Under the pieces are notes generated by a model. It ran no database searches. It had not been told where the DNA came from and saw only the letters and a list, made by a program, of their open reading frames with translations. From the sequence record PP496444.1: 64,000 bases of DNA; one strand, written 5' to 3'. Below are positions 27,152 through 46,977 of the stretch, one piece after another; the stretch's first letter is position 1, and the number at the start of each line of letters is the position of its first letter. Position numbers and translations under genes: made by a program.

Positions 27152-27462
27152 GTGGTCAGATCAACTGACTCACGGGATTTGTACTTCTTCACGAAGTCCG
27201 CCATCAGTTCATCCGCGTCCGCTGCGATCTGGCCACGAATCTCTTCGGGTAGCTGCTTGAAGATTTCCATGATCATCGGCGCGAACAACTCGGCACCCAG
27301 ATTGCTATTGGATACCTCGTAGTGCTTGGCAATCGCCATCATCATGCACGAATCTTCAAGCGGCCATGAAAAGGACACCACCCGAGATGGAGTTGGCAGT
27401 ACCCTTGTCTTGTGCGTGTTCAACTTGCGGAGTGCGCCCGCAATCATTTCACCTAACCCCAT
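27109..27462 (-). CDS. Hypothetical protein
   Basis: AGGAG RBS; overlap coupling. Confidence 0.6.
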   Translation of the reverse strand: MGLGEMIAGALRKLNTHKTRVLPTPSRVVSFSWPLEDSCMMMAIAKHYEVSNSNLGAELFAPMIMEIFKQLPEEIRGQIAADADELMADFVKKYKSRESVDLTTWQGVNVQLGKEDT

Positions 27463-27471
27463 GATGGCTCC

Positions 27472-28110
27472 TTAGATGTCAGCGATGATCTTCAGGATGA
27501 ACGACCGTGCTGCTTCGTTCAAGGTCTCAATACCTGCCAACGCTTTCTTCTTGGCTGGCTTGTACAACCCCAGACGGGATTCGTCAATACCCTCGATGGA
27601 CCCGTCATAGTTGAAGTCGATGAACTCTGCCGACAACAACCAATAGGCACACGCACGAGACGCAGCGAAGTGGAACGCCCAGAGCTCGGCAGGATATTCA
27701 CGCATGACGCCGCGACCTTCATCGTCATGGAGGCAGTACAGAGTATTGTAATCTTTGGGACCGCCAATGGTGAACTGGAAGGTGCGTTCCCCGATGTCCA
27801 TCTTTTCGAACTCAGCAAAGTCTGCTTCGTTGAACAGCCAACTAACTGCCTCGATGGATTGAACGACACCGCCGATGGTCCAGGTAGAAGTGATGACCGG
27901 AGATTCTCCCATGGTGCTGATGCCACCTTTGGAAACGGTCAGGACAGATACGTCGGGGTGCTGCATGGTCAGGAACAGGTTGTCGGTTTGAACGTGGAAC
28001 GGAACAAGTCCGATCTGCATGGACCGCTGGTATTCGTGGCGGCAGTCCAACCTGATGTGCAATTTCGGCTTGGGCGGGGTGACTCGGGACCGGGTGATCT
28101 TGGCTGGCAT
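27472..28110 (-). CDS. Hypothetical protein
   Basis: GAGGA RBS; first gene after the 28163-28191 promoter. Confidence 0.7.
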   Translation of the reverse strand: MPAKITRSRVTPPKPKLHIRLDCRHEYQRSMQIGLVPFHVQTDNLFLTMQHPDVSVLTVSKGGISTMGESPVITSTWTIGGVVQSIEAVSWLFNEADFAEFEKMDIGERTFQFTIGGPKDYNTLYCLHDDEGRGVMREYPAELWAFHFAASRACAYWLLSAEFIDFNYDGSIEGIDESRLGLYKPAKKKALAGIETLNEAARSFILKIIADI

Positions 28111-32434: not shown

Positions 32435-32466
32435 ATTTACCCGAGACGTACCCGCGTGGGGTAAAT
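32435..32466. promoter_or_regulatory. Back-to-back GTAAATG motifs at a divergent gene junction
   Basis: ATTTAC 32435-32440 (minus, toward the helicase) and GTAAAT 32461-32466 (plus, toward the ligase paralog). Confidence 0.6.
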
Positions 32467-32529: not shown

Positions 32530-34008
32530 ATGAAATCTGTAGCCATTGATTACCAAAAGATAGCCAAGGAGTGCCAGTGCACAGAGCTGCCGCCACGGGT
32601 AAGAGTAACCCGTGCACGGGTCTATCCAAACCTGAGGACGTGCCTACTCTATCTCAAGTACGATGCCAAAGGTGAACTGGTGCAAGCCGAGATCACCGCG
32701 CCGTACGACACATCCACCGAGCCAAAGGTGCGTGTGCTCAAACACCCGGACAAGAAGTCGGAGTTCCTTTCATTATATAGGGCGCTGATCCGCCACCAGA
32801 TTATACCGGAGTCGATACCGAAGAAAGGTAACGGCATTGCCCCGACGCTGGAGGTCATCGGTACACTGGTCAGTCTGCTGCCGGGGCGTGACGTTGAAAC
32901 CTTCCGCACGCTGACCCCGGCCATCCAGACCGGTGGTGTCATATACGTGCCACTGGTTACCTCGCGTCCGATGCCGATGGTGCAACACTGGATACCTGTC
33001 AGCCAGCATTCAGAGCTGGGGATGATCGAACTCATTGACACCGACAGCAAGCCTCTACTGAACCAGTGGATCAACAGGTTGAGCAACACGGCCACCGGCT
33101 ATGTGATCTACACGCCGGACGGTTCGCATGCACAGGAACTCCTCTGCTTCCGCGTACCCAACGTGCAAGGTGAGGAACTGTGCGTAGTCAAGAAGGTGGA
33201 CTTCACGCTGACCGTGGCCCGCAGTCTCAAGCCAGTGCTGACCGTATCGACCAAGAGCACGCGTGCCGTGTCCCGCATCCCCCTGCCACATTACCTGATG
33301 CTGCGCAATCACCACATCAAGGTGGGTACCGTGATCTCGCTGCGCCGTAACGACCGGGGCGGGCTGGTGTACCATGAGACGGTAGCGGAGGAAGGCATGA
33401 CACCCTTGCCTCTCTGCCCCTACTGTCACAGCGGATCTGTGCTGCTTCCCGGCAACAACGACGTGTACTGCAAGAACGACTCCTGCCGTGGCCTTGCCAA
33501 CGTGCGCCTGCACTACGTCTTGAACAACAAGCTGGATGTCAAGTACCTGAGCAACACCAAGGTGACAGCGCTGATCAACGACAAGCAGGACCTGTTCACC
33601 CTGCTCAAGACACCGACTCACCTACTGCGACACAGACCGGGCTTCGGTGCACGTACGGTCGATGCACTGGAGAAGAAGCTGGACAGCATTGCAAGTCTTC
33701 CGCTGCATACGCTGGCCGAACTGTCCTGCGCCTTCTACAACGTGGGCGTGCCCCCACTGGATGAGATGGTGTTCAAGAAGATCTTTTCCATCATGTCACT
33801 CGACTACCTGAAAGCGCTGCCGTCCACTGGCAAGATGTACAGTCAGTTGCTCGACATCGAAGGTATCCGCAACAACCGCGCAGTGGCTTTCCTAGCGGGT
33901 TGGCCTGCCTTTCAACAGTGGATGCTAGACCTGGATGCTGCCCTACAATCTCGCAGCGCAGTCTCCACCACGGTAAATAGCCCAAAACAAATTCGAGGTG
34001 TGCAATGA
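32530..34008 (+). CDS. NAD-dependent ligase (LigA) paralog, predicted catalytically inactive
   Basis: LigA-like architecture: LKYDAKGELVQA, YTPDG, OB fold (LKPVL, IKVGT), CPYC..C.N..C zinc finger, HhH (GFGARTV, IEGIR); KxDG replaced by NLRT and TRGDG lost. Confidence 0.7.
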   Translation: MKSVAIDYQKIAKECQCTELPPRVRVTRARVYPNLRTCLLYLKYDAKGELVQAEITAPYDTSTEPKVRVLKHPDKKSEFLSLYRALIRHQIIPESIPKKGNGIAPTLEVIGTLVSLLPGRDVETFRTLTPAIQTGGVIYVPLVTSRPMPMVQHWIPVSQHSELGMIELIDTDSKPLLNQWINRLSNTATGYVIYTPDGSHAQELLCFRVPNVQGEELCVVKKVDFTLTVARSLKPVLTVSTKSTRAVSRIPLPHYLMLRNHHIKVGTVISLRRNDRGGLVYHETVAEEGMTPLPLCPYCHSGSVLLPGNNDVYCKNDSCRGLANVRLHYVLNNKLDVKYLSNTKVTALINDKQDLFTLLKTPTHLLRHRPGFGARTVDALEKKLDSIASLPLHTLAELSCAFYNVGVPPLDEMVFKKIFSIMSLDYLKALPSTGKMYSQLLDIEGIRNNRAVAFLAGWPAFQQWMLDLDAALQSRSAVSTTVNSPKQIRGVQ

Positions 34009-34829
34009 GCAAGAACAAAGGAACACGTACCGCCGTGCTGGTCGGTGGAGGTTTGGACTCCCACGCATACATGGTGTTGAACGCTGATCGAGCGCAGACA
34101 GACTTCATTCATGTGGACTACGGCCAGCGGGTTGCAGTGGCCGAGAGAAACGCCGTGCTGCACATGGCCGAGAAGCTGGGCATTGCCCGCAGTCGTGTGT
34201 ATACGTTGATCTGCGGCAAGACGAACCACATGCGCAAAGTCAACGAAGGCGTCGGCGTGTTGTTCGGCACTGGCCCGGTCGAGATGGACAACGCGTTCGT
34301 GAAAGGACGCAACCTGTTCCTGATTCAGAAGGCCATCGAACTGGGGCATGGTCACGTGCACTTGACGTTGACGCAAGAACGTGGCCGGATGTTCCCCGAT
34401 GCCGATCTGGGATTCGTCCAGCTGGTGGACAATCTGATGCACCGCAGCTACGACGTGAGAGTTACTGCGCCCTACATCATGGAAGACAAGCATCGGGTGA
34501 TGTTCAAGGCGTATCGCCACTGCCCCGAGTTCATCGACATGTCTTTCACGTGCTGGGTCGGCCCTCATGTAGAGTGCGGCATGTGCCCCCACTGCGTCAA
34601 GAAGGAAAAGATTAAAGCCGAGATGGTTATCCAGAAAGCTGAGTACGATCTCAACAAGGATACCCGAGAGGTGCAGTGGGAACAAGTCAAAGCAGGCTAC
34701 GGCAGTGCATTGAAACCAAGCAGTGTTCAAATCTGTGAAGGAATAGCTGCACGTACGGATGAGGCATTAGTTTCATCTCCTATCCGTAGCCCTGATCAGG
34801 CCATGATCAAATCGATCCGAGGTAATTGA
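34005..34829 (+). CDS. QueC-family PP-loop ATP pyrophosphatase, paralog 1
   Basis: VGGGLDS, DYGQR..E, FVKGRNL, FPD..GF, APY...K, TCW...CGMCPHC. Confidence 0.85.
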   Translation: MSKNKGTRTAVLVGGGLDSHAYMVLNADRAQTDFIHVDYGQRVAVAERNAVLHMAEKLGIARSRVYTLICGKTNHMRKVNEGVGVLFGTGPVEMDNAFVKGRNLFLIQKAIELGHGHVHLTLTQERGRMFPDADLGFVQLVDNLMHRSYDVRVTAPYIMEDKHRVMFKAYRHCPEFIDMSFTCWVGPHVECGMCPHCVKKEKIKAEMVIQKAEYDLNKDTREVQWEQVKAGYGSALKPSSVQICEGIAARTDEALVSSPIRSPDQAMIKSIRGN

Positions 34830-34830
34830 C

Positions 34831-35598
34831 ATGAAAAAGTTCGCCAGCTGGTTCAAGCGTCTGCTGAGTAAGAAGCCCAAGTCGATCACGATGACGATGA
34901 CAGACGCCGGTGGCAAGTTGATCACCATTCACATACCACAAGGTGCGGGTGTCGAATACACTCTGTCGAAGTCGGGTACCCACTTGAACGTCTCGGTCAA
35001 GGACGACATCTTCGTACTGAGCACGAACGGTGGTGGAGGTGGTGGGAGCGGCGGTGGTTCCAGGCCTGGTGTCAATGGTGGCCCCGGTCATACGCCCGTG
35101 TATCCGCGCCAAACCGCCCCAGTGGGTGCAGGCGCTCCGAACGCGGGTTGCGCTGGGGATGCACCGAGTGGAGCAGGTGTAACGCCACCAGTGGGCGGAC
35201 AAGCATCGTTTCCTATTGGCGCCCGAGTAACCGTATCAGGTGGTGGCCGGTGTAGTGGTCTGGCGGGTGACGGGCGTGAACGTAAAGAACTCGGGGGTGG
35301 CCCCGGTCCCGACGGAGACAGCTTCGTCGCATCCCCCATTCGCAGTAGTGACCGAGCCTACATGATCCGAGGCTTGTACTACGTCATCACGACCCGCAAG
35401 ATAACAGGCGAGGAATATCCGATCCACGAACTTCTGCACTGGGGCAAGAAGAGCATCGAACTCATGGGCAAGTTCCACACAGTTCGAGATGCTATCGACG
35501 AACTCAAGAAGCAGCTGGGTATCGTGTTAGACGATATTACGGACTATCAGGTTGAATCCATCCCCAAACGCATGTGCAAGCCCCCGCGTAAACCTTGA
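34831..35598 (+). CDS. Gly/Pro-rich hypothetical protein between the two QueC paralogs
   Basis: Basic amphipathic N-terminus, NGGGGGGSGGGS tract, shared VxSPIRSxDxA motif. Confidence 0.7.
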   Translation: MKKFASWFKRLLSKKPKSITMTMTDAGGKLITIHIPQGAGVEYTLSKSGTHLNVSVKDDIFVLSTNGGGGGGSGGGSRPGVNGGPGHTPVYPRQTAPVGAGAPNAGCAGDAPSGAGVTPPVGGQASFPIGARVTVSGGGRCSGLAGDGRERKELGGGPGPDGDSFVASPIRSSDRAYMIRGLYYVITTRKITGEEYPIHELLHWGKKSIELMGKFHTVRDAIDELKKQLGIVLDDITDYQVESIPKRMCKPPRKP

Positions 35599-35636
35599 GC
35601 GGGTAAATGGCTCGTAACTAATCCGGAGACATCAGC

Positions 35637-36455
35637 ATGAACGCTACACCGCCAAAGATCCTTATCGCATTCAGCGCTGGCACAGATTCAACGACAGCGG
35701 CCTACTACTACCGAGGTCTTGGGTATCAGGTAACGCTGGCTGTGTTTGACGATGGCCCCTGCAACGACCCGCAGAGCCCATTGTACGATCCGAGCAAGCC
35801 GGAAGACCTGACCAACTTCTCGGATGAGTTCTACGACTACGTGCGACTGCATCAGGATCACACTGCCCGGCACTTGCAGTTCGACTTCGTTGAGATGCGC
35901 TATCCGCAGCTTCCGTTGCTGGAAGCCAACAAGACGGCCAAGCCCGGTCGGGACAACGCAGCGGCAGCAGAGGCTGATGGCTTGGGGTTCTGGGTCGGCT
36001 TCAAAGGCCTGATGGCAATGATGCTGATGAGCCACGGTGCGGCCAACGGCTACGAGGCTGTGGTCTTCGGACACATGCCGTACAACAGCCATTACGAAGA
36101 TGAGCTGCCCCAGAACTTCGAGCTGCTGCGCCAGTACATGGTTACGGCCTACGGTAGCCGGGTAAACATCCCCCACATCTACCACCCGTTCTACCGCCCC
36201 AACTTCGATACCAAAGAAAAGGTTATCCAGCTGGCGTTGAACATCGGTGTGCCCCTGCGAGATACTTATTCGTGCCGCCGAGGTGAAGTGGAAACCCGAG
36301 GCGTTCTCCTGCCACTTCTTCGTGGTGGTAAATCCAGCTATGTGAATCCCACCTACCGCTGGAAGCATTGTGGTACTTGTGAGAACTGTGTCGAACGCAA
36401 GCGAGCCTTCGCGGCGCTGGGCATGAAAGACCCTGCCCCTTATATGGAACATTGA
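35637..36455 (+). CDS. QueC-family PP-loop ATP pyrophosphatase, paralog 2
   Basis: FSAGTDST, YED..PQNF, HPFY..TKEKVI, TYSC..HCGTCENCVERKRAF..G..DP..Y. Confidence 0.85.
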   Translation: MNATPPKILIAFSAGTDSTTAAYYYRGLGYQVTLAVFDDGPCNDPQSPLYDPSKPEDLTNFSDEFYDYVRLHQDHTARHLQFDFVEMRYPQLPLLEANKTAKPGRDNAAAAEADGLGFWVGFKGLMAMMLMSHGAANGYEAVVFGHMPYNSHYEDELPQNFELLRQYMVTAYGSRVNIPHIYHPFYRPNFDTKEKVIQLALNIGVPLRDTYSCRRGEVETRGVLLPLLRGGKSSYVNPTYRWKHCGTCENCVERKRAFAALGMKDPAPYMEH

Positions 36456-36456
36456 T

Positions 36457-37476
36457 ATGGCCCTTTCAATCTGGCCGCTGACCGAGGAAGAACTCGGTCA
36501 GAACCTAGTCAACGAACTGAATCGTACCAGCAAGGCGCTGGTTAACCGGCGTATGTGGTCTTTGCCACTGCTCCGGCGTTTGTTTTATCGGCGCACTGAG
36601 ATCGGTGTACCGGAACTGCTTCACGTCTGTTCCTCCAATTATCGGGGCCAGATTTACTTCTGCCTGCTTGTGAACTACCGAGACGTGGTGATGGGGAACC
36701 CTGAGCAATACGGCTGGGATCTCGCTGGCCGGTGGTTGTTCTACGACGTGGATCTGTTGGATACCCCGGAGTTTAAGAAGGTTAAGCACGCCATCGGACA
36801 AGCTGCCCCTGTGATTACTGATGTGTCTTATGGTCAAGCATTCGTCCCAGATGAAGGTGGTATGGGGGACGAGCACTGGATCAAGAAACTGAAAGGTAAC
36901 TACCGCCCTCACATTTTCGGCGAAAAGTCAAAACAGGTTATAGTCAGTCAGACCTGTGGTATGGCAGCTACTCATGTGCTGACTGAGGCGGTAATGTCAT
37001 TCGGTATCCAGCGCGCCGAAAGATTCATCGCGGAAGGTCAAGCGGATGTCATGCCAGAGTTGTACGACCTACCCATGCAGCTGGCCGGGCTAGGGTCTAT
37101 ACCTGGAACCCGGATCGGCACCGTTTCACTCACCTGCCGGGATACCCGTGCACTGATCGGAACCTTGTCGTTCTACGTTGTGGCAGGTTTGGGTCACAGC
37201 GACATCATGTACATGCACGAGATGCTGATCGATCCTGATCCGAAGTGGAAGCCTCTGTCGGTAGCGGTCAACTTGCACATCCAGGCAATCATGTACGTGC
37301 GACATCTCAACGACCGATCCAATCAGAGTGCTGACTTGGTGATCAACCTCGGATTCAACTTGGACGAGAAGTATAACACCTACAAAGAGGTGTTCCGTCC
37401 GAACAAGTCAGAGATGGAAATCTACACCGGCATGCACACCGAGCCGGGTATTCCACTGTCCTGTTTCAAGGGGTAA
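36457..37476 (+). CDS. Fem/BioF2-like GNAT acyl/aminoacyltransferase 1
   Basis: WIKKLKGNYR helix; C-terminal INLG...YKEVF signature. Confidence 0.5.
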   Translation: MALSIWPLTEEELGQNLVNELNRTSKALVNRRMWSLPLLRRLFYRRTEIGVPELLHVCSSNYRGQIYFCLLVNYRDVVMGNPEQYGWDLAGRWLFYDVDLLDTPEFKKVKHAIGQAAPVITDVSYGQAFVPDEGGMGDEHWIKKLKGNYRPHIFGEKSKQVIVSQTCGMAATHVLTEAVMSFGIQRAERFIAEGQADVMPELYDLPMQLAGLGSIPGTRIGTVSLTCRDTRALIGTLSFYVVAGLGHSDIMYMHEMLIDPDPKWKPLSVAVNLHIQAIMYVRHLNDRSNQSADLVINLGFNLDEKYNTYKEVFRPNKSEMEIYTGMHTEPGIPLSCFKG

Positions 37477-37479
37477 GAC

Positions 37480-38490
37480 ATGTACACTCCGTATTCCCAA
37501 AATAGCCTTATGCAGTCCATCCCGCTGGACGACAAAGGCACGTTCGCACATCCGCCGTACACCATGGAAGGGGAGTTCACCGACGTGTGGACAAACCCCA
37601 ATCTGTATGGGTTCACCAGCCTGCTGGACGGGCAGAGAAATAGCCGGACGTACCGGTACTGGATGACGTCTCACAACCTTCCCGCGTTGTTCATCGGCCC
37701 GCATCATGAAGACTCTTTCTGGTTTGAATTCAGCACGGGATTGGAACCCACCTGTATGCTGGATTACAACGATATCAATATCCAAGGTGGTATGAAAGAC
37801 TTCCTCGAACGGTTGACTGCATCTCGTCGGCGCGCACTACTCAAGGCAATGGAAACGGATACGGTCATCCACAAGGCAGGAACCGTAGCCAACTTCAATC
37901 TGTATTATCCGGTTGAAGGACGCCTGTACAGCCTGACATCCATTCACGAACGCCGGGTGCTAAAAGACATCTCCGAGTTTATCGAGTCTAAACTCTGGAG
38001 TATGAAGCAACAACCTACTGACCTCACGTACGGGGCTTTCACCACCTTGATGAATCATATCAGGTTGAAGCAACGTGAAGATACACCGCTGGGCCATAAG
38101 TTGCGCAACGTCCAGCTCTTGGTGATCCGAGATGAACGTTCCGGCTTTATCCTGTCGGTTCATCTGGTGGGGATACACACGCTGAAAGATGATAACATGA
38201 ATCCCACCAAGACGTACTTGCACTCCTTTGCGCGCATCACTGTTCTTCATGCACGGATTGCGTTGCTCACGCTGATCAAGGCAGTTCAAGAGTTAAACGT
38301 CACCAGTCAGTACGCATCCCGTGCACAGGAAAAGATCGACTACATCGACGTAAGCAACGTGGTGCTGTCCGAGCGAGAGCAGTACAAGTCGGACTTCTTC
38401 ACTGACCGGTCACAGGTACACGCATGGGCATCCCCGGCGTTGTTGGAACGGCAGTTACCTTTCATCCATCCCCGTGACATAACTCTGTAA
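37480..38490 (+). CDS. Fem/BioF2-like GNAT 2
   Basis: DFLERLTASRRRALLKA; C-terminal YIDV...QYKSDF. Confidence 0.55.
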   Translation: MYTPYSQNSLMQSIPLDDKGTFAHPPYTMEGEFTDVWTNPNLYGFTSLLDGQRNSRTYRYWMTSHNLPALFIGPHHEDSFWFEFSTGLEPTCMLDYNDINIQGGMKDFLERLTASRRRALLKAMETDTVIHKAGTVANFNLYYPVEGRLYSLTSIHERRVLKDISEFIESKLWSMKQQPTDLTYGAFTTLMNHIRLKQREDTPLGHKLRNVQLLVIRDERSGFILSVHLVGIHTLKDDNMNPTKTYLHSFARITVLHARIALLTLIKAVQELNVTSQYASRAQEKIDYIDVSNVVLSEREQYKSDFFTDRSQVHAWASPALLERQLPFIHPRDITL

Positions 38491-38536
38491 ATGATGGGAA
38501 CAGCCCCACCATCACTTTATCTATAGGGTAGTTCCC

Positions 38537-39586
38537 ATGCAAGACTATGACAAGACTTACATTAGCAGCTGTTTAGTTACCAATCTGGTGTACGCGGGTT
38601 TGAACAATCTTATCACGCCCCGTGCCATTGACCTGCTGATCGAACATCAGGCAGCTATGGAAAACATCTATGCCAATTTGGAAACGGCCTATCAGATTCC
38701 ACAACCTTACCCAAAGGAGTCATTCTACTTTCCGTCAGAGGGTACGCCGGTGTTGGTGTCCGATTACCTGAATTCCAGTCCTGCTATTCGTTGCGGAGAA
38801 CTGGCCGGGTTCGAGGCTAAGCCCAGTGCATTCTTCATGCCGACTGCTGGCATCTTCCCGGAACATCGCATCGACGTACGTGGCCTGTCTTTACGCGACT
38901 TCGATCATTATCTAGTCGAACGTGCGGAAGTATCGCGTATCACTACCAATCTGGTGGCCGACAAGTTCCGTTGCGAGACCCACGTGTACAAAGCGGATGA
39001 AGATCACGTCCTGATCCATGACGCCGAACGGCTGGGTATCAGTCAAGCGGACTTCCGCCGCATGTGGGTACAGACCCGCCGCCGGGAAATCGCTGACAAC
39101 TATCTGCAGCACATGCCCATCGAAGACTCCGCCAAGGATGATCAGGTGGTGCGACTGGTCAACGAAGACGTAGCACGGGTGTTCGCCCAGAACGTTGATT
39201 ATGACCGCATGGTTCCGCCTGAGATGATCTTCGACGGGCAGGGTAAGCCAGTGCTGACCGTGCTGAAAGATTGCAACGCCAAGGTGCTAGGGATCGGCGT
39301 ATACGTCATCTACAAGTCCGCTGACCCTGAACAAGACAGCGAGCTGCACTGGCGCGGTGCTTTCTACGACCACGAAGATCCACGCACGGCATCCATGGGC
39401 ATTGAACACGCTCTGGTCGCCAGCGCACTGCACACGGCGTACGCCTGCAATGCGGTCCTGTACTTGACCAAGGCACCGAAGTCCGTGTGTGACGCATGGA
39501 AGACGGAAGTGCACCAAGGTTACGGCCTGGTCCGTAATGCGATGCCGGAACTGTCTGACACCCCTTACATTCTGGCTATCCAGTAA
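38537..39586 (+). CDS. Fem/BioF2-like GNAT 3 (more divergent)
   Basis: DFRRMWVQTRRREI; LGIGVY...GAFYD..SMGIEHAL; C-terminal LYL...AWK. Confidence 0.4.
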   Translation: MQDYDKTYISSCLVTNLVYAGLNNLITPRAIDLLIEHQAAMENIYANLETAYQIPQPYPKESFYFPSEGTPVLVSDYLNSSPAIRCGELAGFEAKPSAFFMPTAGIFPEHRIDVRGLSLRDFDHYLVERAEVSRITTNLVADKFRCETHVYKADEDHVLIHDAERLGISQADFRRMWVQTRRREIADNYLQHMPIEDSAKDDQVVRLVNEDVARVFAQNVDYDRMVPPEMIFDGQGKPVLTVLKDCNAKVLGIGVYVIYKSADPEQDSELHWRGAFYDHEDPRTASMGIEHALVASALHTAYACNAVLYLTKAPKSVCDAWKTEVHQGYGLVRNAMPELSDTPYILAIQ

Positions 39587-39619
39587 ATAGCCGGTAACTC
39601 CATCCATTGAGGTACTTCC

Positions 39620-41704
39620 ATGAAATCCGTGAACCCCATCTTCAAGCACGTTCCCCAGTTCGACTGGCCTGTCATTCCGCGTGCACAGTGGGAAGAGATC
39701 ATCAAGGGCAAAGAGCACGTGATGTTCGACTCTTTCTCGCAACTCGCCCAGGTGCTGGCTATCCCGGCGAGCAGTTACCAGTTCTACTTTGAAGATGGGT
39801 CCACGTTGTTCGCTGGTCCCGAAGCAACCTTCACCGCCGCCCCGTATCCGTTGTATCAGGATCTGGAATTCGTGCTGACCCCCGACGAGACGTTGGTACC
39901 CGGTCTTGCACTGGATACCAAACCGTGGGGCCTGTACACCGATGAATGGGTGGACAAGTACGAAGGTGAGGACAAGGGAGACCTTGATCACAAGACCGGG
40001 TTTGAGTTCATCCCGTTGCCAGACGCCTTGAAACTGGTAACCCTCAACCCGGAGACCATGCAGCTCCAGTACACCGCCATCGAGAGCTTCACGTACGACG
40101 GCGTGACCTACGTATACCTGCTGGCTGATGGCGTGTGCTGGGTACTGGCGGGCAAGTCCGGTGGTCTGGTTGCCAGCGAGCAGGACAAAGGCGCAGCGTA
40201 CATCATGGTGTCTCATCCCGAGTTCGGCGGGTGCAGCGTAGACAACATGTACGCCAGCGAGTTCGGTGAAGAAGACGCGACGTTCTACGTCCAAGACGAG
40301 GAACACAACTACCTGGACGCGGCTAACCGTATCTTCGAGGAAGCCAAGGGGGTAGGTGCTGGTACGTTCCTGACCATCGAGACCGGTGATGGACTGCCGA
40401 CGGCACTGGCCTACAACCTGCGGCACAGTGATGTGTCCCATGTTAACCTGCCGATGCACAACATCCACCAGTTCACCGTGTTGCACGAGAAGCTGGGTGA
40501 GACTCCTAACTTCTCCGATGCGCCGGAAGCGTGCCGCATGAAAGAGGTGATGGAGTATCTGGCGGACCCTGAGTCCCCGGTAGACCATTACTGGTCGGCC
40601 ATCATGGTGCTGGAGAAGAACTTCCCCGGCTTCGCGGAAGCGTTGAAAGACTCCAGCGTCCCGACCCGCGACATCGTGCACTCCAAACAGGCATTCAGCT
40701 TGGAGATCGATCGTCAGTTCGGCAAGGAAGTGGCGAGCAAGATCGGTCTGAACACTGGCGTCTTCGCCCAAGTAAAAGACCGCGATGAGTGGCTGGCGAT
40801 CAAAGACAAGTTCCCTACGCCTTTTGTGGCCGTCAAGTACAACACCAAACACTTCATCGGTATCTTCGACAAGGAAGAGGTGGCGAAGTCCATCAATATG
40901 TGGCTGGCCGGTCAACCCGGAGAGTCGCTGATGATCGAAGAGTACTTCGGTGAAGGCAATCAGGAATTCAACCTGTGCTACGTGATCAACGAAGAGTTCG
41001 TGCAGCCGATGCTGTTCCTGTGCGAAGTCAACAAGATCCTCGGCAATGACACCGGTGGCAAAGGCGGCAACACACTGGCCTGCCATGATGCCCGCATCGA
41101 GAAGTACCCGGAGGCCTTCGAGCCGGTCAACGCTGCGCTGGCTCATCTGCATGAACACGTGGAAGGTGTGAAGGGCTGGGTTGATCTGAGCTTCATGGTC
41201 CGAGACGGCGTCCCGTACTTCACAGAGTGGTGCATCCGCATCGGCTGCTCCAACAACGCCACCATCGTGCGCCAGATGGAAACGCCGCTTAACATCCTGC
41301 TGACTAACCTGACCAACAAAGAATACACCGACGTGAGCTGGAAGCATTCGATGTCTGTTAGCGTGGACATCTACAGCATGCCGCTGTCCGCAGGCAACGA
41401 TGCCAACATGCAGTTCACAGACTCGCTGACCAACCCGGTGCAGATGGTGTCGCCACTCAATCTGGAACTGGCCGCTGAGAGTTTCTTCGACCCGATTGAC
41501 TCGGCCTGGAACGCGGTGTTCGATGGTTACATCGTCGAGGCTTACAACCGCTACGGCACCGTCTCGGGCTACTCCACCAACTGGCAGTTCGCCTGCAGCG
41601 CGGCTTATAACCACTTGAAAGATCAGTCGGTGTTGTACGGAGCGTACCGTGATGCGCCTGTTCACCACGACCCACTGACTCTGTTCCCTTTCCTCAAGGC
41701 GTAA
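39620..41704 (+). CDS. PurD(GARS)-like ATP-grasp ligase with a ~300-aa N-terminal extension
   Basis: LEIDRQFGKEV..KIGL, IEEYF.G.EF, NKILGNDTGGKGGN, GWVDLSFMV..G.PYFTEWCIRIG parallel PurD motifs. Confidence 0.7.
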   Translation: MKSVNPIFKHVPQFDWPVIPRAQWEEIIKGKEHVMFDSFSQLAQVLAIPASSYQFYFEDGSTLFAGPEATFTAAPYPLYQDLEFVLTPDETLVPGLALDTKPWGLYTDEWVDKYEGEDKGDLDHKTGFEFIPLPDALKLVTLNPETMQLQYTAIESFTYDGVTYVYLLADGVCWVLAGKSGGLVASEQDKGAAYIMVSHPEFGGCSVDNMYASEFGEEDATFYVQDEEHNYLDAANRIFEEAKGVGAGTFLTIETGDGLPTALAYNLRHSDVSHVNLPMHNIHQFTVLHEKLGETPNFSDAPEACRMKEVMEYLADPESPVDHYWSAIMVLEKNFPGFAEALKDSSVPTRDIVHSKQAFSLEIDRQFGKEVASKIGLNTGVFAQVKDRDEWLAIKDKFPTPFVAVKYNTKHFIGIFDKEEVAKSINMWLAGQPGESLMIEEYFGEGNQEFNLCYVINEEFVQPMLFLCEVNKILGNDTGGKGGNTLACHDARIEKYPEAFEPVNAALAHLHEHVEGVKGWVDLSFMVRDGVPYFTEWCIRIGCSNNATIVRQMETPLNILLTNLTNKEYTDVSWKHSMSVSVDIYSMPLSAGNDANMQFTDSLTNPVQMVSPLNLELAAESFFDPIDSAWNAVFDGYIVEAYNRYGTVSGYSTNWQFACSAAYNHLKDQSVLYGAYRDAPVHHDPLTLFPFLKA

Positions 41705-41707
41705 TCC

Positions 41708-42871
41708 ATGAGCACTCCATTCCAACAGTTCACCCTAGATGAGTGGATTCGCTACATGCGAGGCGAATCCACTATCTGGCGTATGTACGCCGACGATCAT
41801 CCCGACAGGGTTGAGTTCAGCCCGGTATGGCGTGACGAGATGTACCGGTTGATGGTGCAGTTCAAAGAACTGCTGCCGATGTCGTTCTCCAATCCGGTGT
41901 ACGGCTTCACCGAAGGCTTTTTTGAAGGGTTTGGACTCCAGCCCTTCTACGGCGATGATCCGTTCAATCCGATGGTTCAACCTCTAAGCCACCCTTTGGT
42001 GCACGTGGGCTTCCCGCTCACGCTGGACGAGATGGCATCAAGCATGAAGGACTGGCAGTCCCTGAGCGATCACCTGGGGCGTCCGCAGCTGGTCGATACA
42101 TTCGAGCCGGTTCCGTTGCTATCGCGCAACCTGTACGAGCCTAACGCGTTGCTGACCGTACGGAACAAGGAAGAGATCGTGATGAACGGAGGCTGGTCCA
42201 GTAGATACTTCCTCTGGCTGAACAGTCCGATCACCGAACTCAAAGGTAACTTCGACATTTATCTGGCCAGCCTGACCAAGAAGCGCCGCTACAAAGTGAA
42301 ACAGGCACTGGCGACGGTCGGCACTGAAGAAAACCCGGCTATCAGTGTCAGTACCGGCAAAGGTTTCGGTTACAGTGAGCTGGCAGATCAAGTAGACAGC
42401 ATCCTCGCGACATTTGAAGATCCAGTGGACATCGAGTGCATGCTTCTTCAGCTGCTGTTCGGCGTAGCAACCTGTCACACGCACCCTCATCTGGTCGATA
42501 TCGTTTATGCAGATGAGCAGTTGGGGATCTTCATCAAGCGCAACGGCCACACGATGAACTTCCTCTACAACCGCGACCCGGACAACCGCGCTGATTCAGG
42601 CATCAACCTGCTGACCCAGTACGTGCGCCACTTGCACGAGAACGGCCCGGCAGACATTGCCTACGTGGACCCGACATGTCGATATCGGCCTGACGAGGAC
42701 AGTATGAACACCTACAAGCGGGTGATCACCAACGAGAACCGGTATCACCCAATGCCATTCGTCTCGGCTGACCCTGCGCATATCGAAGGTGTGCTAACCC
42801 CGGCGTTCATTGCGGGTATCTGGCAGCTGGATGCGACCAACGGCCCGGCCAATCCTGAGATGATGGAGTAA
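41708..42871 (+). CDS. Fem/BioF2-like GNAT 4
   Basis: FDIYLASLTKKRRYKVKQA (Acetyltransf_6-type signature); C-terminal YVD...TYKRV. Confidence 0.6.
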   Translation: MSTPFQQFTLDEWIRYMRGESTIWRMYADDHPDRVEFSPVWRDEMYRLMVQFKELLPMSFSNPVYGFTEGFFEGFGLQPFYGDDPFNPMVQPLSHPLVHVGFPLTLDEMASSMKDWQSLSDHLGRPQLVDTFEPVPLLSRNLYEPNALLTVRNKEEIVMNGGWSSRYFLWLNSPITELKGNFDIYLASLTKKRRYKVKQALATVGTEENPAISVSTGKGFGYSELADQVDSILATFEDPVDIECMLLQLLFGVATCHTHPHLVDIVYADEQLGIFIKRNGHTMNFLYNRDPDNRADSGINLLTQYVRHLHENGPADIAYVDPTCRYRPDEDSMNTYKRVITNENRYHPMPFVSADPAHIEGVLTPAFIAGIWQLDATNGPANPEMME

Positions 42872-42873
42872 CC

Positions 42874-43821
42874 ATGGCAAAGCACAAAGTCAAGAGGTTG
42901 GAAATCAGCCACATCTACGACTTCTACCCGTTGTATCAGGTGATGTACGGGCGTGGCATGGAGACCAAAGCATTCGAGGTCTCCAAGTTCGCCAAGATGG
43001 TGCTGGACTTTGAAGCCTCAACCAGTACCCGCCGGAAGTGGGACGTGCTGGAGCCTTTTAGCGGTATCAGCGAGCACGAACACTTCTTCGCTGCGACCGG
43101 CCTGAACATCGAGCACTACACCGGCATGGACATCGTGGTTCCAGAGGGGGCCACGAACGTCATTCAAGGGGACATCATCACCACACCTCTGCCGTCGCAT
43201 GTCAACGCGGTGTTCGCCTTCTACTACAGTTTGCAGAATGTACGGGACGCCAAGACTGATATGCACACGCGGGCCAAGCTGGTTGAGTTCTTTGATAACG
43301 TTCTCGGTCACCTGCAAGTCAACGCGAACAAGAGTCGTATGCCCGCAGTGTTCGCGTTCCACCTTGACCAGCCTGAAGAACCTAATTACTATCTGACGTC
43401 CCGTGCCGACGTTGGAGGTGAGCAATCATGGATCGCACCCGCGTGTGGTCTGCTGGGTCAACATCTAGGGTGCAAGCCGACAGACACGCTGGAAGTGAAA
43501 TGCAATCTGGACACTTGGTACAACCGCATTCAGTGCACGGCGTACGATCAGGCAGAGGACATCCAGATTCTGGTAAATGGGCGAGTAACCGCTACCGTTG
43601 ACATCAAGAAGCCGTTCACCCATCGGGTCTGGACGGAGCATGAGGTCATCGATATCCTGCGGGGTCTGGACTACAAGCTGGATATCCGCATGTACAACGG
43701 CACCCTCTCCAATTACGACTTCGTGATGACCCGTCTGGATGACAAGCCCGTTCCCGGCGATGAAGAGGCTAATACTAATCAGATGACAACTGATATGCTG
43801 GTTGTCGTTAATCCGAGGTAA
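42874..43821 (+). CDS. Class I SAM-dependent methyltransferase 1
   Basis: VLEPFSG (motif I variant), YTGMDI, IQGDI, AVFAFYYSL. Confidence 0.7.
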   Translation: MAKHKVKRLEISHIYDFYPLYQVMYGRGMETKAFEVSKFAKMVLDFEASTSTRRKWDVLEPFSGISEHEHFFAATGLNIEHYTGMDIVVPEGATNVIQGDIITTPLPSHVNAVFAFYYSLQNVRDAKTDMHTRAKLVEFFDNVLGHLQVNANKSRMPAVFAFHLDQPEEPNYYLTSRADVGGEQSWIAPACGLLGQHLGCKPTDTLEVKCNLDTWYNRIQCTAYDQAEDIQILVNGRVTATVDIKKPFTHRVWTEHEVIDILRGLDYKLDIRMYNGTLSNYDFVMTRLDDKPVPGDEEANTNQMTTDMLVVVNPR

Positions 43822-43823
43822 GC

Positions 43824-44741
43824 ATGGCTAAGCCCAAAGTTCCAACCAGAACGGTCCCCACGTTGTACCAAGACTGGGGATTGTACAGCGCCATCTGCGA
43901 GCTGCCCGAGGTTACGATGCTGATGATGTCGCGCTTCGTGGCAGATCGGACCATCGAGCATGCTGAGCGCAACGATCTGGAAAGCGTGTCGATCATGGAG
44001 CCTTTCAGCGGCCCGATCCCGTACTACGAGCCAGACATCCGCAGCTTCCTGACTCGCGCTCGCGTTGATCTGGATACGTACGATCACGTCGAGTACCTGG
44101 ACCATGGTGAGCTGTCGGAAGATAACAGTATCATCATCGGTGACATCACCACCATCGACCTGAAACAGAAGTACGATGTCATCTACGGCAGTTACGGCAG
44201 CTTGGCCTGCTTGCTGCTGGATCAGACGCACAACAAAGCGTACGAGAAGTCGCATGCAGCGCTGGTCAACATCCGCGAGCACCTGAAACCCAACGGCATT
44301 TTCATCCTGAACGCCAACGGGTCCAGCGAAAGACTGTTGAACGATCTGCTGAACTCCGATGAGCCGGATCAGGAGATTCGTGTCCGTCCGGGGTCACAGC
44401 TGGGCAAGGCGTTCCGGCTCAAGCCAGACAGTAACGCGCTGCTTCGCTTCACCTATCAGGTGGACTACGACCGGTGCACCACCTGCACCATGTGCTACTA
44501 CAGCGATATGGTGCTGTCTGTAAATGGGGTTGACATCCAGCGCTGGGAGGTGGAATCCCCGACGTATCTTGCGCCGCTGGATGAACCCGAACTAATCCGA
44601 ATGGCAGGCATGGCGGGTTTCAATCTGGGCAGGACTGAGTTCTACGGATTGGACACCACCGGGTATCCTGCCTTCTTCAAGATGGATACGGTCTGCGACG
44701 GGGCATGGTCCCCCGCCGAATTCGTAGTCTTTCGCACCTAA
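43824..44741 (+). CDS. Class I SAM-dependent methyltransferase 2
   Basis: IMEPFSG, IIGDI, KYDVIY..YGSL, REHLKPNGIFIL. Confidence 0.8.
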   Translation: MAKPKVPTRTVPTLYQDWGLYSAICELPEVTMLMMSRFVADRTIEHAERNDLESVSIMEPFSGPIPYYEPDIRSFLTRARVDLDTYDHVEYLDHGELSEDNSIIIGDITTIDLKQKYDVIYGSYGSLACLLLDQTHNKAYEKSHAALVNIREHLKPNGIFILNANGSSERLLNDLLNSDEPDQEIRVRPGSQLGKAFRLKPDSNALLRFTYQVDYDRCTTCTMCYYSDMVLSVNGVDIQRWEVESPTYLAPLDEPELIRMAGMAGFNLGRTEFYGLDTTGYPAFFKMDTVCDGAWSPAEFVVFRT

Positions 44742-44751
44742 CGAGGTTCCT

Positions 44752-45987
44752 ATGAGCGTTATCATCCCCACCGTAGCGGCAGACAGTGGTCAGCACGACA
44801 TGATCATTCAAGGTTGTTCCACTGGTCGCGTCTCTATGGCTGAGCCTAACGAGGGCTCCAAACCCAAGTCGTCCAAGAAGCTGTACGAACGCGAAGACCT
44901 TATGGCGTACGACAGCGAGTCGGAACACTGGCAGAAGCAGTTGGCCCGCCGCTACGCCCACCACGGTGAGATGGCTGGCGTGCTGAACAACGTCGAGGTG
45001 GTGCCGGAAGCCACCTACCAGAACTTCGACATGAAGATCACCCCGTACACCGCGCAGTTGATGGACCAGAACGATCCCAACTGCCCGATCCGTCTGCAGT
45101 ACATGCCGACCAACAAAGAGCTAGAGTCGATTCAGCGCGAAGAGACCATGCACAACGAACTGGGCGAGGAAGAAGACACCATCCCCGGTACCTCGGTAGT
45201 GCATCGCTATCCGCGTCGTGTCTTGTTCCTGACCACTACCCAGTGCGCCAGCTTTTGCCGTTACTGCACCCGTGCACGTATCGTCTCCCATGGCGGCGAA
45301 GCAGCGATCACCAAGAAGCACCTGGATGCCAGCATCGACTACATCGCGGGCAACAAGGACATCGAAGACGTGCTGCTGTCCGGCGGTGACCCGTTCATCC
45401 TCCCAGACAACAAGCTTGACGAGATCCTCGGTCGTATCCGCGCCGAAGCACCTCACGTTCGCTTCCTGCGTATCGGTAGCCGACTGCCGGTCCAGATGCC
45501 AACCCGTATCACTCCAGAGCTGTGCGAGATTCTGGAACGCCACAACGTCAACATGGTCAACATCCATGTGAACCATCCGAAAGAGGTAACTCCTCTGCTG
45601 GCGTCCCGGTTGAAGATGCTGCGCAAAGCGGGCATCATGCTGGGCAATCAGGCCGTCATGCTGAAAGGTGTGAACGACTCCATCGAGGTGATGACCGAGC
45701 TGTGCTTGCGCATGGTCGAGATGGGCGTGCGTCCGTACTACGTCTACTCCAACGATCCGGTGGCACAGGCTGCACACTTCACCGTGTCGCTGAAAGAGAT
45801 GTTGGACATCAACGAAGGCATGCGTGGCTTCCTGTCTGGCCCGGCGATGCCCCTGTTTATCTGTGACGGAATCGGCGGCCTTGGAAAACTTCCTGTCCAG
45901 AACGACTACGTCAAGGTTAACGACTCCGGTGAAATCTGGGGCCGTAACTACGAGGGTTTGACTACCCGAATGAAGCATCTGGAATAA
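44752..45987 (+). CDS. kamA: Lysine 2,3-aminomutase (radical SAM, PLP-dependent)
   Basis: HRYP.RVL, CASFCRYCTR, LLSGGDP, SRLPV..P.RIT, HVNHPKE, NQAVMLKGVND, PYYVYSND, DGIGGLGK (PLP lysine). Confidence 0.93.
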   Translation: MSVIIPTVAADSGQHDMIIQGCSTGRVSMAEPNEGSKPKSSKKLYEREDLMAYDSESEHWQKQLARRYAHHGEMAGVLNNVEVVPEATYQNFDMKITPYTAQLMDQNDPNCPIRLQYMPTNKELESIQREETMHNELGEEEDTIPGTSVVHRYPRRVLFLTTTQCASFCRYCTRARIVSHGGEAAITKKHLDASIDYIAGNKDIEDVLLSGGDPFILPDNKLDEILGRIRAEAPHVRFLRIGSRLPVQMPTRITPELCEILERHNVNMVNIHVNHPKEVTPLLASRLKMLRKAGIMLGNQAVMLKGVNDSIEVMTELCLRMVEMGVRPYYVYSNDPVAQAAHFTVSLKEMLDINEGMRGFLSGPAMPLFICDGIGGLGKLPVQNDYVKVNDSGEIWGRNYEGLTTRMKHLE

Positions 45988-46138: not shown

Positions 46139-46576
46139 ATGAGCTTCTCCGTAACCGTAGCTGCACAGACCATCGCTGCTCCCGAGTCGCTGGGCAACCC
46201 GTCGAAAGGCGCAAGCGTCCTCGAAGCCAACGAAGGCTTTGCCGTGATCGAGTTCCAGCGTCCTCGCGCTTCAAAGCGTGACCAGATCGCCGTTCCTCGC
46301 GCCCAGATCCTTTCCCTGAGCCACGGCAGCGCCGACGGCGACAGCGGTTACCTGATCGCTCAAGGCATGGCCGGTGTGGCCGACGAATTTGAAGCCGCAA
46401 GCTTCACCATCGAAGGCAACGTTGCCACTTTCGTGACCGCTGAAGGCGCCACCATCGAAACCGACGCACGTCTGACCCGCATCCTCGCTTACGGTGTGGA
46501 AGAAGGCGAAAACAGCCTGCTGGGCGCGCCGAAGAAGAAAGCTGGCAAAGAAAAAGCAAGCACCAAGAAGAAGTAA
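46139..46576 (+). CDS. Highly expressed hypothetical protein with Lys-rich tail
   Basis: Strong codon bias, GAGG RBS, own terminator, KKKAGKEKASTKKK end. Confidence 0.75.
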   Translation: MSFSVTVAAQTIAAPESLGNPSKGASVLEANEGFAVIEFQRPRASKRDQIAVPRAQILSLSHGSADGDSGYLIAQGMAGVADEFEAASFTIEGNVATFVTAEGATIETDARLTRILAYGVEEGENSLLGAPKKKAGKEKASTKKK

Positions 46577-46656: not shown

Positions 46657-46977
46657 ATGGCTAAAGACAGATTCCTGATCTACTCCAACAAATGCTTAGG
46701 GTGTAAACACCTCGTTGATGGAGCCAAGAAGACCTACACTGCTTGTCACTACAGTGAAGGCAACGAACGCTGCCCCGCGCAGTACGTCCAGATTGTTACG
46801 GGTGTGGATATCCATGCCTTGGCTACTGAGTTGGCGAACGCCATCAGGGCCAATGATTCCAAGAAGTACGATCGGGTGAATGCCAAGATCGGTAAATTGG
46901 ACACTGTGGTTGCCAGTAGTGTGAAGCTGGCCGCAGATAACCTAATAGCAGGGGCCGGTGATGGCGAAGGTAAATAG
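46657..46977 (+). CDS. Hypothetical protein with Cys/His cluster
   Basis: C..C.H...C....C pattern; GAGGT RBS. Confidence 0.65.
   Translation: MAKDRFLIYSNKCLGCKHLVDGAKKTYTACHYSEGNERCPAQYVQIVTGVDIHALATELANAIRANDSKKYDRVNAKIGKLDTVVASSVKLAADNLIAGAGDGEGK

Follow-up and report, generated by a model that had tools for sequence, protein, structure and literature searches.

The locus and its genes

A 12-kb region of the DNA analyzed here, a 64,000-nucleotide (nt) stretch of sequence record PP496444.1 (the window), contains eleven genes, g1 to g11, whose predicted products include two QueC-family proteins, a PurD-like ATP-grasp protein, a FemAB-like GNAT, two methyltransferase-like proteins, and a KamA-family aminomutase. 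The region matches Pseudomonas phage vB_PpuM-Peetri (200,264 bp) at 100% identity; window coordinates equal record coordinates minus 124,000 and are used unless the record is named. Peetri, a lytic myovirus (jumbo phage) that infects P. putida, belongs to the Estonian CEPEST collection, and the paper on that collection is silent on the cluster (10.1101/2024.03.26.586772). The reading favored here, with modest confidence, is that the cluster forms one half of a split pathway for 7-deazaguanine DNA hypermodification, the half that builds the side chain.

GenBank coding sequences (CDSs) Peetri_00183 to Peetri_00193 match the eleven open reading frames (ORFs), two of which are labeled "QueC-like" and the rest "hypothetical." Together with the preceding gene, g0, the features are as follows.

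32530 to 34008, plus strand: g0 (Peetri_00182), LigA-like, with OB, Zn-finger, and HhH regions
34005 to 34829, plus strand: g1, QueC-A (Pfam QueC, 4e-18)
34831 to 35598, plus strand: g2, Gly/Pro-rich protein of 255 aa without a family match
35637 to 36455, plus strand: g3, QueC-B (Pfam QueC, 9e-12)
36457 to 37476, plus strand: g4, probable GNAT-type acyl/aminoacyl transferase, from a weak profile-profile match to g8
37480 to 38490, plus strand: g5, possible distant FemAB-like GNAT paralog, also from a weak profile-profile match to g8
38537 to 39586, plus strand: g6, ORFan with homologs in G3 phages only
39620 to 41704, plus strand: g7, PurD-like ATP-grasp protein of 694 aa (TIGR00877, 7.6e-9)
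41708 to 42871, plus strand: g8, FemAB-like/Acetyltransf_6-type tandem GNAT, from AlphaFold2 and Foldseek and from Pfam matches in its family
42874 to 43821, plus strand: g9, class I S-adenosylmethionine (SAM)-dependent methyltransferase-like protein, paralog of g10
43824 to 44741, plus strand: g10, class I SAM-dependent methyltransferase, from AlphaFold2 and Foldseek
44752 to 45987, plus strand: g11, KamA-family radical SAM/pyridoxal phosphate (PLP) 2,3-aminomutase (TIGR00238; PDB 2a5h)

The layout and flanks given in a preliminary description of this DNA are borne out: the eleven ORFs are tightly packed on the plus strand, with gaps from g1 to g11 of 1, 38, 1, 3, 46, 33, 3, 2, 2, and 10 nt, a UvrD-type helicase gene lies upstream on the minus strand, and genes for GyrB/ParC-like topoisomerase II subunits lie downstream. 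Eight sister phages are 87-88% identical to Peetri across the region. The ratio of nonsynonymous to synonymous substitution rates (dN/dS) between Peetri and Aura is 0.07-0.27 for all twelve genes g0 to g11, which are all under purifying selection. The cluster is a real, conserved operon.

Two divergent QueC-family proteins

The two QueC assignments of the preliminary description hold for g1 and g3; the Pfam match of g3 covers the C-terminal half. The canonical QueC signature (PMC13082051) comprises SGGxDS, YxQxHxxE, VPxRN, YPDC, and a Zn motif. Alignment against this signature places GGGLDS, YGQ(x)5E, KGRN, FPDA, and the Zn motif in g1, and the family that g1 forms with its orthologs (QueC-A) keeps YGQ, (E/K)GRN, (F/Y)PDA, and the Zn motif. 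The corresponding g3 family (QueC-B) keeps the P-loop and Zn motif only; YxQ, RN, and YPDC are missing, and the pocket motifs are replaced by G(F/W)K and H(Y/F)xDE. Both g1 and g3 score far below the TIGR00364 cut-off for canonical, preQ0-making QueC. The best PDB match of g1 is Cap9 (9nto_B) at 7e-8 versus 3e-3 for QueC (3bl5), and a PDB sequence search with g3 returns no match. BLAST, by which orthology in metagenomic contigs (L numbers) was assigned throughout, finds orthologs of g1 in contigs L017, L021, and L022 and in Vibrio phage GR7B (GR7B_117), and an ortholog of g3 in L021 (50% identity, 5e-83).

Cap9 is a QueC-like enzyme that employs the QueC mechanism to link a deazaguanine carboxamide to an amine (PMC11996544, PMC13082051). 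The g1 protein, which retains motifs of the deazaguanine pocket, is proposed to be an amide ligase that activates 7-carboxy-7-deazaguanine (CDG). In contig L020, a single 492-aa protein (L020:2-1480) consists of a QueC-B domain fused to a g4-like domain (1e-6 for the g4 part), which ties g3 to g4 in Rosetta-stone fashion.

Between the two QueC genes, g2 encodes conserved N- and C-terminal parts separated by a variable Gly-rich linker. Its reading frame is kept through insertions and deletions and its dN/dS is 0.20, but it is present only in P. putida G3 phages, and Pfam (to E 10) and other family scans yield no match. The Peetri g1 protein ends in a tail of ∼35 aa (34725-34829) that Aura and Voja-6 lack. 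This tail repeats a g2 motif (35317-35375), SPIRSxDxA(Y)MI, with 55% identity over 20 aa, and the repeat resembles a local duplication or recombination scar. The common motif was considered as a recognition peptide and set aside, as the tail is specific to Peetri.

The resemblance of g1 to Cap9, together with a conserved Gly-rich protein encoded between both QueC genes, bears on an alternative in which the modified molecule is a protein. QueC-like enzymes would couple a deazaguanine carboxamide to an amine of a protein, as Cap9 and QatC do, with a phage or host protein (e.g. g2) as the target, and the ATP-grasp protein, Fem-like proteins, and methyltransferases would decorate the protein or a linker for regulation or counter-defense. 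Protein conjugation is known for QueC-family enzymes that are paired with TGT-family partners (PMC11996544, PMC13082051), and peptides are common substrates of Fem-type and ATP-grasp enzymes. We nevertheless consider protein modification unlikely. The g2 gene is absent from Vibrio phages GR7B and GR11A and from all metagenomic relatives that keep the core module, and its product lacks an N-terminal glycine. Family scans of the cluster proteins, which did not include the PADLOC library, match none of CD-NTase, QatA, QatB, or QatD. Moreover, the phage has its own FolE and QueE, like DNA-modifying phages, and the module is located in the replication region.

Candidate aminoacyl transferases

The preliminary description counted four Fem-like GNATs, which overstates the case: g8 is supported, g4 and g5 have weak profile support, and g6 has no support. 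An AlphaFold2 model of g8 (pLDDT 57, pTM 0.65) has high-probability Foldseek matches in the PDB to 2hqy, Sbb17, FemX, and MprF/aaPGS domains (TM about 0.3); Sbb17 is an aminoacyl-tRNA-dependent peptide synthase. The g8 sequence itself has no direct Pfam match. Within its family, PF13480 (Acetyltransf_6) is found in 6 of 85 members (best 3.8e-8) and PF04339 (FemAB_like) in two. An exhaustive profile search of 1.84 billion representatives places the family in 92 clusters at 50% identity, and sampled members sit in phage-like contigs beside QueC genes. The g8 protein is proposed to be an aminoacyl-tRNA-dependent aminoacyl transferase.

Comparison with the 92-cluster g8 profile by hhalign gives P 3.8e-4 over 155 co-linear columns (probability 36%) for the g4 family and P 0.0016 over 164 co-linear columns (probability 16%) for g5, which hmmsearch detects with E 0.0036. 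Both alignments are co-linear with the C-terminal GNAT region of the g8 profile. The g4 protein is probably a second GNAT-type acyl/aminoacyl transferase and a partner of QueC-B, and g5 is possibly a distant FemAB-like GNAT paralog. Direct profile-profile comparison of shallow alignments gives no sign of paralogy among g4, g5, g6, and g8. Pfam at E ≤10 yields nothing useful for g2, g4, g5, g6, g8, g9, or the N-terminal domain of g7. Homologs of g6 (dN/dS 0.13) are confined to the Peetri group among 5.8 billion proteins, and its profile shows no relation to g8, g4, g5, or GR7B_116.

The most divergent gene of the cluster is g4, with 68% amino acid identity between Peetri and Aura, compared with 82-93% for its neighbors, and 91% to Voja-6. 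Its dN/dS is also the highest of the cluster, at 0.27. This divergence suggests mosaic exchange or diversification of one enzyme.

No tRNA genes are annotated in the phage. The sole ARAGORN call, an 81-nt tRNA-Gly(GCC) at record 8353-8433, falls inside CDS Peetri_00006 and may be a false positive.

ATP-grasp protein, methyltransferases, and aminomutase

The ATP-grasp assignment of g7 holds at the superfamily level. The match to TIGR00877 (purD) covers residues 355-584, and a g7 family profile finds three PurD structures in the PDB, 5vev (the best, 4e-5), 2xcl, and 2yw2. Because the TIGR00877 match scores 34.9 bits against a cut-off of 288 and Pfam GARS_A (2e-4) scores 21.7 against a curated cut-off of 27, g7 is, judged by sequence, not a PurD ortholog. 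The ATP-grasp domain spans residues ∼350-590 and follows an N-terminal region of ∼350 aa without assigned function. Orthologs of g7 are found in GR7B, GR11A, L011, L020, L022, and L016.

That the cluster encodes two methyltransferases is supported by fold for g10 and by paralogy for g9, as hhalign aligns the pair with 96% probability and the motifs LEPFSG, DI, and GDI are common to both. The widely conserved copy is g9, with orthologs in L011, L017, L020, L021, and L022. An AlphaFold2 model of g10, built from four sequences (pLDDT 68, pTM 0.70), matches CypM (2e-8), CalS10, KedS8, and glycine/sarcosine N-methyltransferases in a Foldseek search of the PDB, so the modeled fold is closest to amine N-methyltransferases. 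Sequence matches of g10 are weak (daptide methyltransferase, 0.008; Methyltransf_31, 0.034), and the g9/g10 family profile has no PDB match by sequence. Both folds that were modeled, g8 and g10, came out as the preliminary description had claimed.

The KamA assignment of g11 is firm at the family level, with 267.6 bits against a TIGR00238 cut-off of 199.2 and both Radical_SAM and LAM_C domains. Comparison with Clostridium lysine 2,3-aminomutase 2a5h (7.5e-78) reveals conservation of CxxxCxxC (C125, C129, and C132), Arg134, Asp293, Asp330, and the PLP lysine, Lys337. Asp293 and Asp330 are presumably the ligands of the lysine ε-ammonium group in 2A5H, which would point to a basic substrate such as lysine. 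Scores against equivalog models fall below their cut-offs (314 vs. 525 for AblA, TIGR03820), including those for glutamate and arginine mutases. With these lysine-type residues, g11 is the proposed supplier of β-lysine. Its orthologs in GR7B, GR11A, and L022 are 51%, 49%, and 58% identical, and KamA is present in three lineages.

Deazaguanine genes elsewhere in the genome

The preliminary description saw no DpdA or TGT gene, which is correct for the 64-kb window and incorrect for the genome. Peetri_00102 (record 82042-83412, minus strand), outside the window, belongs to the TGT (tRNA-guanine transglycosylase) family (Pfam TGT 5e-8, 32.8 bits vs. 26.3) and contains the motifs DSGGFQ and PCNCPVC and a basic Lys/Ser-rich tail; a PUA domain was not detected. 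Its best solved match is the archaeosine tRNA-guanine transglycosylase ArcTGT (1iq8, E 0.002). The "TGT domain" proteins of GR7B and GR11A share 52% and 51% identity, respectively, with Peetri_00102; a more distant homolog is encoded by Achromobacter phage Motura, for which a deazaguanine DNA system has been cited (PMC7824862). A transglycosylase of the DpdA family is described as the signature of 7-deazaguanine DNA modification in phages (PMC10516641). A hidden Markov model of 120 relatives of phiST CGPG_00065 found no DpdA3 in the ORFs of Peetri, GR7B, and L008.

Genes for GTP cyclohydrolase I (FolE; PF01227, 2e-39) and a QueE-like radical SAM protein (phrog_2076, 3e-43) lie near the DNA polymerase gene. 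A Pfam scan of 59 unannotated, hypothetical Peetri proteins yields a PTPS/QueD-like match (PF01242, 2e-7) in one of them. The probable source of this match is Peetri_00018, with its CxxxxHGH motif; a PDB sequence search with Peetri_00018 finds nothing. Taken together, TGT, FolE, QueE, and QueD are hallmarks of 7-deazaguanine DNA modification in phages. Peetri_00227 (407 aa), encoded between QueE and FolE, was examined as a DpdA candidate and rejected, as it is a sliding clamp (phrog_947; homologs are annotated as clamp/Pol III beta).

Since the archaeal enzyme closest to Peetri_00102 acts on tRNA, and the TGT family includes other tRNA enzymes, a different product can be imagined: a free 7-deazapurine-peptide metabolite, or a queuine-like base that TGT puts into host tRNA, reprogramming translation. 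The Foldseek neighbors of g8 and g10 include the natural-product enzymes Sbb17, CypM, and CalS10. Pathways to nucleoside and peptide antibiotics typically feature β-lysine, ATP-grasp enzymes, tRNA-dependent transferases, and N-methyltransferases. Such a product has only a slim chance of being the right one. The phage-encoded TGT homologs studied so far have all been reported as DNA enzymes (PMC10516641), and Peetri_00102 combines the basic tail with the apparent lack of a PUA domain. Furthermore, the cluster has no exporter or self-resistance gene, and pattern scans of 185,579 species-representative cellular genomes find no relative of g7 or g8.

Conservation of the module

Scattered genes without co-conservation would have refuted the preliminary description, but distant phages and metagenomic contigs keep the core genes together, with identities of 20-58%. 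QueC-A, QueC-B, ATP-grasp, and FemAB-like GNAT genes recur beside replication genes in unrelated large phages, mostly with a g9-type methyltransferase gene, and the module adjoins helicase, polymerase, or GyrB-like genes in Peetri, GR7B/GR11A, L017, L018, and L021. GR7B and GR11A carry the module between the same helicase and topoisomerase genes as Peetri. Gene order in these Vibrio phages is LigA-like, DUF5591/ArcS-like (GR7B_119; PF17884 2e-6, 28.2 bits vs. a cut-off of 26), canonical QueC (GR7B_118, 2e-60), divergent QueC, a 340-aa marginal Acetyltransf_6 protein, the g8 ortholog, ATP-grasp, KamA, and a small PF00583 GNAT. Both phages also have FolE and a QueE-like radical SAM gene beside the clamp gene. 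The small GNAT gene directly after KamA (GR7B_112, L002:16579-17058; GR11A_47, L003:16586-17053) has no counterpart in Peetri. The metagenomic contigs that carry the module or parts of it are as follows.

L017, 167 kb: QueE-like, PolA, QueC-A, QueC-B, 281-aa protein, g8-like, ATP-grasp, g9-like, then GyrB
L021, 23 kb: helicase, QueC-A, QueC-B (50% identical to g3), 266-aa protein, ATP-grasp, g8-like, g9-like
L022, 11.6 kb: three QueC, ATP-grasp, g9-like, two g8-like, KamA (58%)
L018, 182 kb: Gat-QueC with g8-like and ATP-grasp
L008, 238 kb: Gat-QueC with g8-like and ATP-grasp, plus FolE and GNAT
L011, 4.9 kb: ATP-grasp, g8, g9, g10, in the Peetri order
L020, 5.6 kb: QueC-B::g4 fusion, ATP-grasp, g9-like, g8-like

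Genes of the g8 family lie beside QueC-family genes in L008, L017, L018, L021, and L022 and beside ATP-grasp genes in L011, L017, L018, L020, and L021, with the ATP-grasp gene of L022 in the same module. A survey of 50,697 phage records finds the g8 family in nine P. putida and two Vibrio phages and in no others. Scans with short peptide patterns, for which absence is weak evidence, find no g7 or g8 relatives in IMG/VR or in 185,579 species-representative GTDB genomes, and the JGI metagenome pattern scan finds one short contig. Within the QueC/ATP-grasp/GNAT/KamA module of L022 lies a Tad2-like gene (L022:5335-5607; PF11195, anti-Thoeris).

This recurrence also bears on the idea that the cluster has no link to deazaguanine. 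In that case, g1 and g3 would be generic PP-loop amidoligases acting on, for instance, a DNA pyrimidine, a cell-wall precursor, or a polyamine, and FolE, QueE, and TGT would form an independent, ordinary dPreQ0/dADG system. The loss of QueC pocket motifs from g3 and the position of the deazaguanine genes away from the cluster favor such a separation, and peptidoglycan precursors are the normal substrates of Fem enzymes. However, the FolE/QueE/TGT set would then be left without any QueC, and g1 retains residues shown to be essential for CDG binding (PMC13082051). In addition, g8 and ATP-grasp genes stand directly beside QueC-family genes in five independent lineages, among them Gat-QueC next to FolE in L008 and canonical QueC with DUF5591/ArcS in GR7B. 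An unlinked cluster is accordingly judged improbable.

Transcription signals and flanking genes

The hexamer GTAAAT occurs 23 times in the window versus 13.5 expected, a modest excess, and at least 23 copies arise in 2 of 100 shuffles. The copies that concern the cluster are as follows.

33973 to 33978, plus strand: GTAAAT promoter-like element, 32 nt upstream of g1
35603 to 35608, plus strand: GTAAAT before g3
38487 to 38492, plus strand: GTAAAT before g6
39583 to 39588, plus strand: GTAAAT before g7

These four stand 32-50 nt before their genes, in keeping with the earlier claim that the motif precedes internal genes. A fifth copy named in that claim, at 44520, lies inside g10, 232 nt before g11, and is not ahead of a gene. 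The four upstream copies are part of a longer sequence, (G)GTAAAT(a/g)g, that is also found ahead of other genes on either strand, and this extended motif is therefore probably a phage-specific promoter element. Examples on the minus strand are at 22988, 28174, and 32435 and on the plus strand at 32461, 46052, 48988, 62071, and 63965; most lie 25-50 nt upstream of start codons, and the 46052 copy lies ∼87 nt upstream. Peetri encodes a sigma factor of its own (Peetri_00099). Sigma-70 promoters and intrinsic terminators are no commoner than chance within the cluster.

The g0 stop overlaps the g1 start by 4 nt, and g0 is probably in the same transcription unit as g1 to g11. The NCBIfam LigA match of g0 is limited to residues 309-409 of 506 aa (2.7e-7), and its best PDB match, DNA ligase 8ak4, is weak (E 0.022); neither search detects an adenylation domain. 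The dN/dS of g0 is 0.07, and homologs adjoin the cluster in GR7B and GR11A. The protein may belong to the system, possibly as a DNA-binding partner. Translation of g0 is coupled to that of g1. Peetri also has a full-length NAD-dependent ligase, the product of a separate gene (Peetri_00141).

Two small genes, g12 (46139-46576) and g13 (46657-46977), lie between KamA and topoisomerase and have counterparts with 35-41% identity in GR7B/GR11A; the Vibrio g12 homologs have a Lys-rich C-terminal tail. Elsewhere in the genome, Peetri_00028 (record 26618-27715) encodes a 365-aa thymidylate synthase homolog, and its Pfam match of residues 34-358 to a 266-position model implies a large insertion.

A proposed pathway

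The preliminary description, which reads most of the genes correctly, envisaged a multistep assembly line and did not recognize the combination as any described DNA-modification pathway of phages. A β-amino-acid source, several amide-bond formers, and methyltransferases are indeed supported; the chemistry, product, and DNA target are what we infer. Because the genome has TGT, FolE, QueE-like, and QueD-like genes, the combination can be recognized as an elaboration of the known 7-deazaguanine pathway, and the same gene set makes DNA the favored of the three targets listed earlier (DNA, protein, or small molecule).

In the pathway proposed for Peetri, FolE, QueD, and QueE would make CDG. QueC-A (g1) would then adenylate the C7 carboxylate of CDG and couple it to an amine instead of ammonia. 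This amine would be β-lysine made from lysine by g11, with KamA acting likewise in GR7B and L022. Further aminoacyl units would be added to free amino groups by g7, by QueC-B (g3) with g4, and by the Fem-type g8 (perhaps also g5), for which aminoacyl-tRNA would be the donor. Remaining amines may be N-methylated by g9 and g10. The TGT/DpdA homolog would swap guanine in phage DNA for the deazaguanine, either before or after side-chain building, and the resulting bulky, cationic adduct would shield the DNA from restriction and other DNA-targeting defenses.

Precedents exist for parts of this scheme. ArcS makes preQ0-Lys on nucleic acid (PMC11298593), and DpdM methylates and DpdN formylates dPreQ1 (PMC10516641). 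The literature searched (deazaguanine, DUF5591, the CEPEST phages, and GR7B) describes the cluster nowhere and links deazaguanine in phages with no aminomutase, ATP-grasp, or Fem-like enzyme. The predicted product class is best regarded as an undescribed extension of known 7-deazaguanine DNA modification.

Several observations weigh against a hypermodification pathway. Neither QueC paralog is canonical by sequence, and the closest solved relative of g1, Cap9, modifies a protein rather than DNA. Some 75 kb separate the TGT gene, and some 23 kb the FolE/QueE genes, from the cluster, and because of this distance their link to it rests on co-occurrence and QueC membership. The comparison of the Peetri TGT with a DpdA3 profile by hhalign is not significant, and no tested DpdA subfamily fits. 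The Fem-like status of g8 comes from a low-confidence model and the profile scores of g4 and g5 are weak; the specificity of g11 is read from two Asp residues, with every equivalog model below its cut-off; and the scheme gives no role to g2 and g6. No action of Fem-type transferases on nucleobases is known. Finally, the CEPEST paper used ordinary Illumina sequencing and reports no restriction tests, and its only hint is that DNA of "G3" jumbo phages bound poorly to the columns of one kit (10.1101/2024.03.26.586772).

A more specific version of the hypermodification reading is offered tentatively, as a possibility that may well prove wrong. In it, guanine is replaced by a 7-deazaguanine whose C7 carboxyl bears a methylated β-lysyl/aminoacyl chain, built in part by Fem-type enzymes from aminoacyl-tRNA. 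Such a base would be the first peptide-like and the first tRNA-dependent DNA base modification, and the set of QueC-A, QueC-B, ATP-grasp, GNAT, and methyltransferase genes would define a new and widespread "aminoacyl-deazaguanine" family of DNA systems in large phages.

Comparison with known systems

Phage 7-deazaguanine systems offer the closest parallel. Eight derivatives are known (dPreQ0, dADG, dG+, dPreQ1, mdPreQ1, fdPreQ1, dDG, and dCDG), and DpdA acts with FolE, QueD, QueE, and QueC (PMC6884629, PMC10516641). Peetri is likewise a large lytic phage with TGT/DpdA-family, FolE, QueE-like, and QueC-family genes and a QueD-like match, located in or near the replication module, and tailoring of the side chain has a precedent in the methyltransferase DpdM and the PurN-like formyltransferase DpdN. 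In contrast, the Peetri QueC proteins form two conserved, non-canonical paralog families, no DpdA3 homolog is detected, and the genes of the pathway occupy three separate parts of the genome. Peetri also adds an ATP-grasp protein, FemAB-like GNAT(s), KamA, and two amine-methyltransferase-like proteins, none of which the eight known derivatives need.

In Cap9/Cap10 of type IV CBASS and in QatB/QatC, a QueC-family enzyme adenylates as QueC does but links the C7 carboxyl of a deazaguanine to a different amine in place of ammonia, and g1 keeps the same reduced motif set as Cap9. Those systems serve bacterial defense and modify the N terminus of a partner protein, whereas the Peetri genes are in a phage, together with genes for de novo CDG synthesis and additional amide-forming enzymes. 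In the ArcS/RaSEA archaeosine pathway, the 7-deazaguanine that receives lysine is already part of a nucleic acid, and GR7B and GR11A carry a DUF5591 (ArcS) protein gene directly upstream of their QueC genes. However, tblastn finds no DUF5591 homolog in the Peetri genome, the Peetri radical SAM enzyme is a KamA-family PLP aminomutase, unlike RaSEA, and the linkage proposed is an amide from CDG rather than an amidine from preQ0.

Thymidine hypermodification (putrescinyl-T in PhiW-14, glutamyl-T in SP10, and aminoethyl derivatives in ViI/M6) also appends amino acids or amines by several enzymes and yields cationic, restriction-resistant DNA. The base and the chemistry differ, and the families of the cluster proteins match no hmU kinase, aGPT-Pplase, or hydroxymethylase. 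FemXAB/MurM, MprF, and Sbb17 share with g8 the modeled tandem-GNAT fold, a C-terminal YK motif, and family overlap with PF13480 and PF04339; the known members aminoacylate peptidoglycan precursors, lipids, or peptides, whereas the g8 family is rare and its sampled members lie beside QueC genes. AblA/AblB (Nε-acetyl-β-lysine) and EpmB/EpmA (EF-P β-lysylation) pair a KamA-family aminomutase with a dedicated transferase that receives β-lysine, and the KamA-GNAT order of GR7B and GR11A resembles ablAB. Unlike AblA and EpmB, g11 scores below both equivalog cut-offs, and in Peetri it is accompanied by neither an adjacent small GNAT nor an EpmA-like ligase.

Significance

Cultured carriers of the module fall into two groups only, the nine P. 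putida G3 phages and Vibrio phages GR7B and GR11A, and both are laboratory systems. The two conserved, non-canonical QueC subfamilies bear on the repurposing of the QueC scaffold in Cap9 and QatC. If the proposed pathway is true, four enzyme classes would be newly recruited to DNA base modification: QueC-derived amide ligases, PurD-like ATP-grasp proteins, Fem-type (possibly tRNA-dependent) transferases, and a lysine aminomutase. The repertoire of 7-deazaguanine DNA modification would then grow from eight small C7 substituents to methylated, cationic adducts that bear amino acids or peptides, and adducts of this bulk would be expected to influence restriction, CRISPR, and glycosylase-type defenses as well as the sequencing and cloning of these phages.

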